Source of the DNA: Ginkgo biloba | Lineage: Eukaryota > Plantae > Ginkgophyta | Assembly: GCA_024626585.2 (NCBI GenBank) | Contig: JANKJI020000002.1 | Coordinates: 6,671,803 to 6,690,821 of the forward strand | Direction: 5' to 3' | Length of the DNA stretch: 19,019 bases | Shown here: in pieces, positions 2,057 through 13,876 of the stretch | Numbering within the stretch: position 1 is the stretch's first letter | Layout of the letters: each line of letters opens with the position of its first letter | Program-made: the position numbers and the translations under genes | Notes under the pieces: generated by a model | What the model was told of the DNA's origin: nothing | Database searches by the model: none | The model's input: the letters and a program-made list of their open reading frames with translations, nothing else

Positions 2057-3177
2057 AATTATATGTCTCAAGTTCAGATCACCAAATGGGGCAGGGTTAA
2101 TCACGTGAAAATTGATTCTCAGAATGGGAGATGGAACCGGAGCTCAAGGCGAGAACNNNNNNNNNNNNNNNNNNNNNNNNNNNNNNNNNNNNNNNNNNNN
2201 NNNNNNNNNNNNNNNNNNNNNNNNNNNNNNNNNNNNNNNNNNNNNNNNNNNNNNNNTTGTGTAAAATGTGGCAATAATTTACCAGGAGGAAAGAATATAT
2301 ATATATTTAATTAAAATATGCATAAGATTCTTTATATGCAACTTCTATAGCATTTTAATTCTACCAATTTTGAAATGCATTATTTTGAATACAAATTGTA
2401 AGCTTGAACCTCTTAGAGTTGTAACAAACTCTCTCCATTTGCCATCATCATCAATGACAATTCTTACATTCCATATACACTTACAAGTATACAAATGCAT
2501 TTTCTCCATCACCACTTTTATGAAGATAAAATGTTAAGTTATGTTCCAATTATATTAAAAATAGATCCTCTTCTAGGTCCCCTTGTATTGTTGCATCCTA
2601 AAACCATCATTAACAAAACAACTTCTCTTGGCATTGTTTTATTTAACAACCATCTCAAAAGCCCTATCAATTTTTTAAGAATATGCTCCAACTTTAAAAT
2701 CTTCCATCCTTTAAAGATTAAGAATCTTTGAAGTTTCCAACAATTTCTTGATTATTTAAAAGATTTTTAAATCTTCTAATCTTTAATTCTTAAATAAACT
2801 TATCAATTTCTATTACATCTAAGTGGCTTGGGAATATGAGTGTTTTACAAAAAACATTTTACTAAATTTTATCAATCTTTATTTATCTTCAAATATTTTT
2901 GCTTTATGTTTTGAGGGCTTGCAAATGATGATTATGCTTCTGATGATATTGGCATTGCTGTTTGAACTGATACTGCATCTTGATCCACTGCTGAAATTAA
3001 TATCAACCAGGATTTCCTAGCATCTATGCTTAATATTCATTGATTAGCTTTTAGACATTGGTGTATTTCTTGTTGCATAACAAACTGAATGCAATGTAAT
3101 AGAATCTAAAATAAAATAGACTGCATTTCATGAGAATTGAGAGTTTGATTCTCACAGATTGAAAGTGTAAAGTGCAG

Positions 3178-3354
3178 GCAGAGTTGTTTGTGCTCAGACT
3201 TTCACGTCATAGTGGTGTCGCTGGGCTTGCTGGCATGGCTTTTGTATCTCAGCTGTTCTTTGACATTCCTTTTGGTTACATTGGCATTAGCGGGAATCAA
3301 GGAATTCTTCTGGTCAGACCCTTGCTGCATTTCACCAAGGATGATCTATACAAA
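3178..3354 (+). CDS. RSY3: tRNA(Ile)-lysidine synthase (TilS/RSY3-like), internal exon A, 177 nt, phase 0/0
   Basis: TGCAG|GCA ... AAA|GTGAAT. Encodes AELFVLRLSRHSGVAGLAGMAF...ILLVRPLLHFTKDDLYK, containing the TilS (D-Q)-A-E-x-F-x-L-R-L-x-R-x-S-G-x-x-G-L-A-G and RPLL motifs. Confidence 0.93.
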
Positions 3355-4341
3355 GTGAATACTACAACTCTGACCTAAAATGGACTGTTTTCTGTTGTTA
3401 CAGTTTTAGTTTATTGATAGTGACACATTTCCAAAGTTTCTTGTGCAGGGAAGAGTCGGGCCTAGTTGAAATGACATTTGTTCCTGTATATTAAAGTTTA
3501 TAGCGTAACACAGAATTGATTGCTAATTTATCTTCAAAATTCAGATTCATTGGGCTCTTTTTCAACTTCAAAAAAACCAACCTGTCTACATCTAGTGGTG
3601 AAATTGTTTTGTTTCGAACATATGATGTATACTATTAATTAGGAATTTCAGTCGCATACAAAAAGTTTATAGATGATGACAATAATGAGAGCTCACATGA
3701 GGTCAATAAGTTGAATTTGAATTCTTAAAGTGCATTATAGTAGTTCTATCGACTATAAAACTAGCACCAAAATTTTGTTCCCAAAATTCAAATGAGATAA
3801 GTTAGATCTAACAAAAATGAATGAGATAACGAACACTATTGAGCTATAGTAGATTGAGTGTATCATGCATGTTGCGTGGCATCTCCTCCCTCAGCCTATT
3901 ATTACTAACATGCACTGGCTTGGTGTCCACAGCCTTTAGTCTAGTAGATGTATTGGAAGTATCAACCTTTGTTGTTTTGAAGAAATATACTTTGGTAATT
4001 GTATTGATCATATGCACAGGAGGACTCCAATTGTTAGTTACTATGTTGGCTAAATTGTTTGAGGTATTATTACTTGATTCATAATAAAATTGGTCTTAGT
4101 AAATGAAAGATTGTTGAGTAGTAAATACTTTAGTATTGTGTCTATTAATCCTGCTATGCATATTACTTTGATGTTCATGACTTCATAAATCAGTGCAGTG
4201 TTTGGCTAGTTAAAGTTCCATTTTTCTTGTAGTGCTTGAGCCTTGCAATATTTTGCTTTAATTCATATTTGTCCTATTGTCCTTTTTATCTCTTTATTGT
4301 TTGAGTCTTTGAATGAAGTCATATTGATGCTTTCAATTCAG

Positions 4342-4444
4342 ATATGCGAAGAGGCTGGCCAACAATGGGTGGAGGATCCAACAAATCAAAATTTTGCCTT
4401 CACTCGTAACCGGATCCGCAAATCTTTAGGTGGCTGTCACACGT
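4342..4444 (+). CDS. RSY3: TilS/RSY3-like internal exon B (3' boundary 4442 or 4444)
   Basis: TTCAG|ATA TGC...; encodes ICEEAGQQWVEDPTNQNFAFTRNRIRKSLGGCHT, with TilS W-V-E-D-P-T-N and R-N-R-I-R motifs; in frame with exon A. Candidate donors GT at 4443 and 4445. Confidence 0.9.
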
Positions 4445-4812
4445 GTTTGGAATCACATTTTTGGGGCAGAAGAGTTTTCAAACTGTGAGAAGTGCTATGC
4501 CTTTCTGCTGGCAATAGAAATCCAGCTTCAAAGAGAATGGATCTCAAAAAAGATTGATTTAGGGCATTGGTAATAGATAGTATAATACTTGAAGGTTTGT
4601 GTGAAGCGAGAACTGTTCTGAGATGAGCCGACCTGGGGCAATCGCATCTTGAGTGTCTTAGCCAAGGAGCCACTCTGTGATTTAAGGCTTTTACTGTGGG
4701 TTTGCTGCACTCTTGGCAGCGGTGGGAGCATCTGCATCATCCAATATCCTTTATTGAAATGTGCACTGTCTAGCTGCTCCGGAGTAGACTTATTCCAAAA
4801 TTGTGTGAATTG
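4445..4812 (+). other. RSY3: Short, GC-rich, structured intron with non-canonical or ambiguous 3' splice site
   Basis: Separates exon B from exon C. In-frame stops at 4486-4488 and 4806-4808 show it must be removed. Boundaries are GT-TG (4445-4812), GT-AT (4443-4810) or canonical GT-AG (4443-4822, losing 4 codons). Confidence 0.75.
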
Positions 4813-4922
4813 GCAATTTCAGAAGTGACATACAAGATCTCATTTCTTCTTGTCAAAGATTGCAGGCATTTCTCAATGTTTCTTGTGACCATTTGATGGA
4901 GGAAACGGTTTCTGTTAATGAA
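4813..4922 (+). CDS. RSY3: TilS/RSY3-like internal exon C (5' boundary 4811, 4813 or 4823)
   Basis: Encodes (C/G)NFRSDIQDLISSCQRLQAFLNVSCDHLMEETVSVNE, matching the recalled plant RSY3 stretch FKSELQAVISxCRxTRxxVDxxCxxLIxxxVxV; ends at perfect donor GAA|GTAAGT. Only partly captured by the ORF track. Confidence 0.85.
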
Positions 4923-7149
4923 GTAAGTGATTTTTATTACTTCAATTGTAACAAACTTTGCTTTCAGTTGTTTCTTCTTTTTGGGCAAAGCATTCACTCC
5001 CTTCTCAAAAATACCCAGCCCATTAGACTGAGTGCTTTCTGAATTTTATCACTACTTAAGAAACCAAAAGATTTCCCATTTTCCAAGGACAGTCAACATG
5101 ACGGGTGAAGAACATATTAGATAAGATCTGTACAAAGAGCAGAAGTATTGTAGTATCACAACATAATGTGTTTTGACTTATAGTTAGTGCTTCATCAATT
5201 TGAAAATGGAGAACATGGAGGTAAGAACGTGGCCTATAAAACATGAGCTTGTGCTATGGAATGTGACCTGTCTCATCAAACATGGCTACCCCACATCTAA
5301 TGGATTTCACGTGCATGTTATTTTCTGATAGCCATGATGATCATTGTATCCCACTGAGGTGACTTCTCTGCGTTTCCTGGTGCATTCTGGATAATGAACC
5401 TTTTTGTGGGTCCTACTTCGGAGCTTCGTTGTTTCCTTAGTATATCAGGTCTCCATGTTGCTGGTTCTAGCTGTTGCCACCTCCTTCCCTGATTCCCTTT
5501 GTGATATAACCTTGTTTCTACAGGTGTTACCAGTTGTACCTTTCGGTAGCAGCATCTTGCTGATATGCCTGTGATTGAATAGGAGTCTTTTGATCTCTCT
5601 GTGTTATCAAAAGCAAGCATACCCTTGTGATGAACATAACATACAGGTTGGAAGGAGTTAGGACTTGTGCCTTCATGAACCATTGCCTATGATCTAGTAT
5701 GCTGCCAGTGGTATTTGGTGAAACAATAGTGCCAATGCAAAGTTACATCACCTCCTTTGGACTTCAACATTTGATTTATAGTTTCTTGTGAGCCCCTTTC
5801 ACTGCCAACTCTATAAATTCGCACTAGTATTCATTCATCATTTCTTCTTCTATATAATCAATTTTATCTCATATATAATTGTATAGAGTTAGAGAGAAAC
5901 TAATGTAGGGGATTTTGATTCATGAATGTGAGATAATCTTTTGTAAACCTTTTGCTTGCATGTTATCTTTTATATGAATTCTTCAATATTTTTTTTTTTG
6001 TTATTCTCTGATTTCCAACAAATTTTTCATAGTAAGTCTATATTATTAGTAAGTGGTCCTTTCTCTTTATTTTCTTTATTATTTAAAACATTCACAAAAG
6101 ATATAGTCATGGGTGAAATGACATGATTTATAAGGTATTATGTTGGTTATAAGTAAGAAAATTTTTATTAATATCTAAAATATCATTCCAATCAATAAAA
6201 TAGCCCTATAAAAAAGAGTAAAAGTCTTATTTATTTAAGGAGTTATACAAAATACTAGTAAGAATATGTCAACCACTATTGTATAAATAGAGTAGGCCAA
6301 AGAAACTATATAACTAGACTATATAATATCTTCAACATAATAAATATAAAAAGAAGTAAATATTGATGTATATCAAATCCATGACACAAATAAATAAGGA
6401 TAATATTTAAATTCTTAGTGAAAATAAGGAATACCAAGCCATGCAATACATTTTTCTTGAAAACTAATAATATGTATTTGTCCTCCAAAATCTAGTGATC
6501 CTATTTCATAAGAAATAAACTAGATATAACATATGGAAAACCATTCAAAAACCCTTAATGGTGGATTTATATTATGGAAACTATGATAGTCCAATCCTTC
6601 CATCACTTAGAGANNNNNNNNNNNNNNNNNNNNNNNNNNNNNNNNNNNNNNTAATAAAAAAACAAACATAGAGAGATAAGTAAGATAACTAATGGGTATA
6701 TGGATAAATAAAATTGGGTCTCATTTCCTATGATTACTTACCCTCTATAAAATATAAAAATAATTGAAGAAAGAGTGAATGATAATTTGTGGAGGATTGA
6801 GAAAATGATTACCTTGTAGATTACAGATAAGAATGAAAAAATAAAAAGGAAAATAACATAGTAGATAAATGTTTATAAACTATTACCACTCACTANNNNN
6901 NNNNNNNNNNNNNNNNNNNNNNNNNNNNNNNNNNNNNNNNNNNNNNNNNNNNNNNNNNNNNNNNNNNNNNNNNNNNNNNNNNNNNNNNNNNNNNNCTTTT
7001 CCGCTCTATTTGGAAAGCTCACAAGGTCTTGTGCAGGGTCCTGAACTATTCTTTTGCTATGAATCATTGATTTGTTTCTTTATGTACATAGTGCTATGTA
7101 ATTTAAAGTTGTTTTGGCTACACAAAAAAATTGAGAGATCATTGCTTTA

Positions 7150-9685: not shown

Positions 9686-9911
9686 GAATACTGCCGTTCC
9701 TTTTGGAAAAATTCTTCTGAATAGTGCATTGTCATTCCTTTTCGAAAAATTCTTTGAATAGTGCATCGCCCTTCCTTTTGGAAAAATTCTTCTGAATAGT
9801 GCATTGTCATTCCTTCTGGAAAAATTCTCTGAATAGTGCATCGTCATTCCTTCTAGAAAAATTCTTCCGAACATTGCATTGTCGTTCCTTTTGGAAAAAT
9901 TCTCTGAATAG
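9686..9911. repeat. Minisatellite, ~6 copies of a 37/38-bp unit (GAATAGTGCATYGTCATTCCTTYTGGAAAAATTCT[T]CT)
   Basis: Units start at 9686 (partial), 9719, 9756, 9794, 9831, 9869, 9906 (partial). Confidence 0.95.
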
Positions 9912-10231
9912 ACAATAACTTATTAAAGAGGAACGGGTATCGCTCTAATCTGATTCACTCCAGGTTTCAGGGCAAGTTATGGAGCGTAACAAATATAGGG
10001 GGTGGATCCATCACTGAAGTAATCTACAAAATTAACTCACTAGGATCATCTCAATCTTTTGTGAAAGCATGCCTTTCACATTGCAATTGCATGAAGGGTG
10101 TACTTGGTTTTATATATCATTGGAGCATTTTGATTTATAGTTATTGATGACAACTGACTTCAATAAAGAATAAAGATTGAGATATTGTATCAATATCGAT
10201 TATAAAGGAGGTCATGTACAGATCCTTTGAG

Positions 10232-10385
10232 TATATACATGTATATATACATATACATATACATGTATATAAGTATATATACATGTATTTACATATACAT
10301 GTATGTACATATACATGTATATACATGCATATATATGTATATATACATGTATATGTGTATATACATTTACATGTATATAAATATA
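10232..10385. repeat. Degenerate (TA/CA/TG) alternating purine-pyrimidine microsatellite running into a gap
   Basis: TATATACATGTATATATACATATACAT... directly visible. Confidence 0.95.
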
Positions 10386-13135: not shown

Positions 13136-13542
13136 GAAATGTTCATCCTCTGCTCGACGCTGATGGGAGTAATGGTAACAGTAGATTAATGGCATTGAAA
13201 ATCCTACAAATTGATTTTTTGCTGAGATCTCTCGATAATTTTGATCTTTCAGTTGATTCTATAGAGATGTGTTTGATGTTCGACATAAAATTCTTGTAAA
13301 AAGCTAAACCGTGATGTTATTTTATATTATATGTGCAATTTCTGCACCTTAACAAGTTTTAATTATCAGTGTCTTAACTATGCACTTGCTTTTATAAATA
13401 TTTTAGGTAGTGTGTTCTGTTATCTGAGCTGTAGTTGTCGCTGCAAAATGATAGCTAATATTTTCCTATTTAAAGCTGGTCAAGTTTTGGCATAAACCGC
13501 TTTTCAGCATTACTAAACCTCTATAGGTTTTCTGGAATGCAG

Positions 13543-13635
13543 GATTATGGTTATGCTGTACTTGATGTTCAGAAGCTCTTGGCATGCAATATCACTGATT
13601 TATGCTTTTCAAGGTTTCTTCTCTTGCTGTTACAG
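13543..13635 (+). CDS. RSY3: TilS/RSY3-like internal exon D, 93 nt, phase 0/0
   Basis: TGCAG|GAT ... CAG|GTATGT; DYGYAVLDVQKLLACNITDLCFSRFLLLLLQ matches recalled plant RSY3 GYAxxDLExLxPSxxxDICLSKxxxxVLQ. Absent from the ORF track. Confidence 0.88.
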
Positions 13636-13795: not shown

Positions 13796-13876
13796 TTCGT
13801 CTCCCAGAAGTGCAGGCCACTTCGAGGAAAGGTTATTGAAATGCTTATTAACTACATCTGCAGTTATCCTTGCAAG
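13796..13876 (+). CDS. RSY3: TilS/RSY3-like internal exon E, 81 nt, phase 0/0
   Basis: CGTAG|TTC ... AAG|GTTTGT; FVSQKCRPLRGKVIEMLINYICSYPCK matches recalled FISQRxRPxRGxTSKLLLxYIRxxPCK/R. Confidence 0.9.

Follow-up and report, generated by a model that had tools for sequence, protein, structure and literature searches.

The window analysed here, a 19,019-nt stretch of a Ginkgo biloba contig, carries five internal exons (A–E) of RSY3, the plant homologue of TilS, and at the conserved junction between exons B and C the assembled sequence has a TG in the place of the AG acceptor. Sequence comparison suggests that the absence of the AG at this junction is real and that ordinary explanations fit it better than non-canonical splicing. 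The reading we favour, tentatively, is that an insertion of 93 nt pushed the old acceptor away from exon C and that the assembly shows either an allele damaged recently, a young duplicate that does not work, or a local mis-assembly. The degrees of confidence attached to this and to the competing readings are judgements and were not computed.

The identification of the gene as RSY3/TilS, already proposed in the first-pass annotation, is borne out by a Pfam search of exons B, C and D, in which exon B matched PF01171 (PP-loop TilS domain), and by the seed-plant RSY3 exon pattern; the best named protein match for exons A–E is RSY3 of Cryptomeria japonica. All features described below lie on the plus strand. 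Exon A (positions 3178–3354, 59 codons) has a normal CAG acceptor and a GT donor, exon B (4342–4444) encodes the C-terminal part of PF01171 with the RNRIR helix and ends in phase 1, and exon C (4813–4922) is followed by a GT donor at 4923. Exons D (13543–13635) and E (13796–13876) are intact and have canonical sites. The intron positions and phases of RSY3 (RASPBERRY3) in seed plants are those of exons A–E, with the B–C acceptor alone departing in the window, which does not extend to the 5′ exons or the last large exon.

Several minor features of the window may be recorded here. Around exon A, about 150 nt of upstream and 25 nt of downstream intron sequence are ~70% identical to a conifer-like contig that lacks exon B (window 3025–3379 against L018:1544–1897), and the exon A acceptor has a second CAG 20 nt ahead of it. 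The C–D intron, 8.6 kb long, contains a 38-nt tandem repeat (5.7 copies) and an AT/AC-rich microsatellite (9697–9911 and 10231–10366); a minor-type branch motif, CCTTAAC, followed shortly by a CAG (13347–13369), lies ~175 nt upstream of exon D, probably by chance. It should be noted that the 19-kb window is interrupted by 11 N runs, eight of them of exactly 100, so that the assembly is fragmented or masked and single junctions deserve less trust.

A recheck of the sequence confirmed the observations from which the anomaly had been noticed: the TGA at 4806–4808 shares the reading frame of exon C, no AG occurs past it before 4821–4822, and the assembled base at position 4811 is T. Removal of 368 nt does give the two gap-free products that had been claimed, one with GT-TG ends (4445–4812) and the other with GT-AT ends (4443–4810). 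Orthologues were located through exon A and through the sequences of the homologues themselves, and were compared locally. In every orthologous locus examined, from grasses and other angiosperm contigs to Nymphaea and Tasmannia, the B–C intron is in phase 1 at the same codon; it is 370 nt long in Nymphaea and 207 nt in Tasmannia, and in the five angiosperm genomic orthologues for which both intron ends were available it always ends in CAG. Two types of conifer transcript, aligned nucleotide by nucleotide, agree with a donor at 4445 and an exon C start at 4813, and have AG against the TG of the window (4811–4812). Directly before exon C both have CCAG; window exon C is preceded by TTG instead of YAG. 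On these alignments the GT-TG intron (4445–4812) is the positional homologue of the B–C junction, and the description of a colinear junction without an AG acceptor holds in this form. The TG itself is not conserved, its site being occupied by AG in the five angiosperm loci and the two conifer transcript types compared. The GT-AT reading is rejected, as 4443–4810 would be in phase 2 against phase 1 in every orthologous locus and has no U12-like (minor-type) donor at 4443.

The protein is equally constrained at this point. Of 177 homologues, 171 have a spacing between RNRIR and the conserved Cys that departs from the mode by at most one residue, and 153 of these 171 have the conserved Phe. Five database RSY3 proteins (P0085, P0093, P0184, P0223 and P0232) have deletions or an insertion at the B–C junction, which may be annotation errors or alternative acceptors.

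Site strengths were estimated with a matrix built from 23 normal RSY3 splice sites, a small set (23–28 sites in all). Of the donors, 4430 scores 6.5, the homologous phase-1 GT donor (4445–4450) 4.4, 4485 3.0 and 4443 2.2, within a normal range of 1.8 to 9.6. Among the acceptors, the CAG ending at 4719 scores 6.2 and is the top-scoring AG of the intron, the CAG at 4820–4822 inside exon C scores 3.1, and the TG at 4812 scores −10.9 (normal −1.0 to 12.1). Scored by itself, the upstream tract of the 23 normal RSY3 acceptors spans 0.3 to 9.9, whereas that of the TG reaches −8.9 and that of 4822 −2.5, again on this small matrix. With a hypothetical A at 4811 the acceptor would still score −5.6, under the lowest normal value of −1.0. 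Because these site and tract scores are below normal, neither the TG nor a one-base fix of it appears to resemble a long-standing major-type acceptor.

The displaced acceptor that we propose is the CAG at 4717–4719, the end of a probable ancestral intron 3′ terminus (4675–4719, score 6.2). In both conifer transcript types a conserved, stop-containing segment of 39 nt that ends in CCAG stands between exons B and C. In similarity to this segment, the 40 nt before CAG 4719 rank 3–4 of 2203 AG sites, and the sequence before the TG ranks 1442–1989 of 2203. As a positive control, the true exon A acceptor ranked 12 against its conifer orthologue, with 4719 at ranks 10 and 6. With 28 AGs in the intron, the match of 4719 has p of about 0.05–0.1, which is modest, and the likeness to a conifer intron end is suggestive rather than proof.

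The conifer segment has good acceptor scores (7.9 and 8.6) and poor donor scores (0.8 and 1.5), and may represent an upstream acceptor, a cassette exon or a tiny retained intron. It is identical at 33 of 39 positions in two distant conifers whose synonymous identity is ~53% (RNA contigs L019:770–808, L020 and L021), and it may mark a conserved unproductive splice form of RSY3 in which the enzyme is truncated past the TilS domain.

Between CAG 4719 and exon C lie 93 nt (4720–4812), with in-frame stops at 4753–4755 and 4806–4808. We infer that these ~93 nt were inserted next to what would have been the ancestral acceptor of the B–C intron, so that TTG now precedes exon C. The sequence TTGGCA occurs at both ends of the segment (4713–4718 and 4810–4815), although part of this repeat is fixed by the exon start and its support for an insertion is weak, and the insertion probably arose through break repair at the short GGCA homology common to both ends. 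Splicing of the assembled copy would then run mostly from donor 4445 either to CAG 4719, where the reading frame meets the stop at 4753–4755, or to CAG 4822, where it is out of frame and stops immediately. Little or no full-length enzyme would be expected from the assembled copy, and working RSY3 would come from another version of the gene, with CAG joined directly to exon C.

The event would probably be recent and unrescued, because an old, rescued junction should have improved its tract and lost 4719, and neither is seen. A recent event would leave the start of exon C conserved and dN/dS unchanged. Over its first 10 nt exon C matches one conifer at nine positions and the other at seven, and the exon dN/dS is 0.21–0.23 against the two conifers, compared with 0.25 between those conifers; these values indicate purifying selection, although the measure is blind to recent loss. 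An old pseudogene is rejected on the same exon-wide values. The intact state of the other exons had been held to argue against a pseudogene altogether; dN/dS does disfavour an old one, but a recent lesion would leave the exons intact too.

Several points weigh against a damaged copy. The match at 4719 is modest (p about 0.05–0.1), the conifer segment is known solely from RNA contigs and could represent a cassette exon rather than the intron end, and the site matrix rests on only 23–28 sites. For the 93 nt no source was found in the window or in the orthologues, and the window holds no other copy of them. Since the Arabidopsis RSY3 knockout is embryo-lethal (PMC11938285), an intact copy must exist if the assembled one is dead; none was seen, and we count this against the reading as well. 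The nearest known class is the disruption of splice sites by short insertions, with rescue by cryptic sites or intron sliding (PMC2891723). The window has in common with it an apparently displaced old acceptor, a segment flanked on either side by a short repeat, and cryptic in-frame GT and AG; it differs in that no source element for the segment was found in the window or orthologues and that any rescue is putative.

If the copy is damaged in this way, the junction is an ordinary lesion. It should be noted that transcripts of an intact allele, when mapped to the assembled sequence, would give a spurious GT-TG intron; a non-canonical intron should therefore not be called here without prior DNA reads.

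A doubtful reading is that the TG is used in splicing. The major spliceosome would recognise its 3′ end by CAG 4822 but would sometimes, in the second step, ligate at the TG 10 nt upstream; the ancestral protein would thereby be restored exactly, while the AG product, out of frame, would be degraded. The junction is colinear, and its codon would be Cys, as in Cryptomeria. In human data a TG acceptor always accompanies an AG as an alternative to it, at most 28 nt away in the reported tandems (PMC2374985), and CAG 4822 lies within this distance. Minor non-canonical pairs make up ~0.09% of plant introns, many of them with RNA support (PMC6310983). On the other hand, the tract before the TG is very poor, CAG 4719 competes with it, no human TG site serves as the only acceptor and most are minor, and AG-to-TG mutants activate neighbouring AGs instead (PMC2374985). 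The window shares with the U2 TG alternative 3′ splice sites of the GNAS intron 3 type (PMC2374985, PMC4176328) a TG less than 28 nt from an AG and a major-type GT donor. Here, however, the AG partner gives an out-of-frame product, so that an essential gene would have to rely on the TG, a situation not described for the class, and the vertebrate cases are conserved whereas the TG of the window is not kept in orthologues.

We also considered a 17-nt helix between 4437–4453 and 4792–4808 as a putative bridge between the intron ends. The duplex reaches −17.7 kcal/mol, a value attained by 0.2–0.6% of controls in a region chosen post hoc, and two inverted repeats of like size lie near it. Its pair probability of 0.95 holds only for a fold of the isolated intron and drops to at most 0.01 once more flank is included, which counts against its assisting the TG; we give the helix no role in the junction.

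The first-pass annotation had concluded that the functional mRNA uses a non-canonical 3′ splice site. The GT-TG junction is indeed colinear, but the tract score of −8.9, the competition from the stronger CAG 4719 and a canonical in-frame route through 4485 weaken this conclusion. It is doubtful that the TG acceptor is the main productive site of a plant gene. Were this or a minor-type route true, an essential plant gene would depend on a non-AG acceptor, against the human rule that TG sites are secondary only.

The canonical route just mentioned came from an enumeration of all stop-free in-frame pairs of donors and acceptors, and it corrects the statement that the only canonical in-frame options delete 4–5 residues. 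A cryptic phase-2 donor, GTGAGA (4485–4490, score 3.0), joins CAG 4822 or AAG 4825 (4823–4825) in frame, lengthening exon B by 40 nt that contain no stop. The product gains 10 or 9 residues, respectively, and these end in V-F-K-L before the conserved D-I-Q. An intron shifted on both sides in this way, with a new Phe-Lys, seems unlikely. An AlphaFold model of the Cryptomeria protein (mean pLDDT 75.8) places the junction codon, C283, at the passage from a 4-residue loop to a 32-residue helix (283–314), and the added residues would be predicted to sit in the loop before this long helix. The route is stop-free, in frame and GT-AG, its donor (3.0) and acceptor (3.1) are inside the leave-one-out ranges of normal sites, and sliding through cryptic sites is documented (PMC2891723). 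Nevertheless, none of the 177 homologues has more than five extra residues at the junction, donors 4445 and 4430 outscore 4485 just as CAG 4719 outscores 4822, and with 4822, the better acceptor, the new Phe would be one residue out of register. A weaker variant from donor 4443 would delete 4–5 residues which, in the model, form the opening turn of the helix with its Phe. If the shift through 4485 were true, it would be a clean recent case of two-sided intron sliding.

It is quite unlikely that the anomaly is a small error in the sequence, the true one either reading TAG through an A at 4811 or regaining CAG through a second GGCA unit, with an ordinary GT-AG intron of 368–372 nt. One small change would suffice, the intron would be as long as in orthologues (370 nt in Nymphaea), and the window, with its 11 N runs, is heavily gapped. 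A second GGCA unit added before exon C gives a computed score of 2.8, inside the normal range, and RNA validation of annotated non-canonical plant sites varies from 15 to 91% (PMC6310983). Against an error, the acceptor with A at 4811 remains at −5.6, below every normal one; moreover, the T at 4811 lengthens the repeat common with 4713–4718, and the conifer-like acceptor at 4719 is left unexplained.

Much the least probable is a pair of introns, the first running from 4445 to CAG 4719 and the second, a 69-nt minor-spliceosome intron, from AT at 4744 to TG at 4812, with a 24-nt microexon between them. The microexon would encode eight residues, rich in Ser, Ala and Gly, in a loop, and both ancestral sites would stay in use. 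A perfect minor-spliceosome donor motif, ATATCCTTT (4744–4752), does stand 24 nt past CAG 4719, in the phase required and immediately ahead of the first stop, and is the only such 9-mer in the window; the minor donor consensus is absent at 4443 and 4445. Minor introns have no pyrimidine tract and prefer a branch 11–13 nt from their end (PMC3584512), and a branch-like match at seven of nine positions places an A 12 nt before 4812. This is the best match 10–20 nt from the 3′ end, yet it lacks both core T bases and has a chance frequency of 3.8% of positions, so no proper minor branch site was found there. The orthologous intron is major-type, and the gain of a minor intron is a rare event. The term AT-TG did not turn up in a survey across eukaryotes, in which ~75% of the non-canonical minor introns of plants are AT-AA (PMC10639083). 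In comparison with U12-type introns with non-canonical ends (PMC3584512, PMC10639083), the perfect AT-type donor at 4744, the missing pyrimidine tract and the branch-like A 12 nt from the end are shared, while the absent branch core, the TG end and the non-minor donors 4443 and 4445 set the window apart. Were such a structure real, an essential gene would depend on a microexon born of an insertion and on an AT-TG minor intron.

Other elements were rejected more simply. The whole intron folds no better than its shuffles (z = −0.27), and on this value a multi-hairpin regulatory RNA is rejected; a local motif scan and ARAGORN gave no group II intron (GUGYG start, domain V), box C/D snoRNA or tRNA, and local comparison did not support an exon duplicate or a 97-nt tandem copy.

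Irregular joins in this part of the gene also occur in grasses. One grass contig joins exon A directly to exon C, skipping exon B with a frameshift (L005:246–532), and another retains the A–B intron with the later introns removed (L004:439–1185). Splicing around exon B thus looks error-prone or regulated in other plants too.
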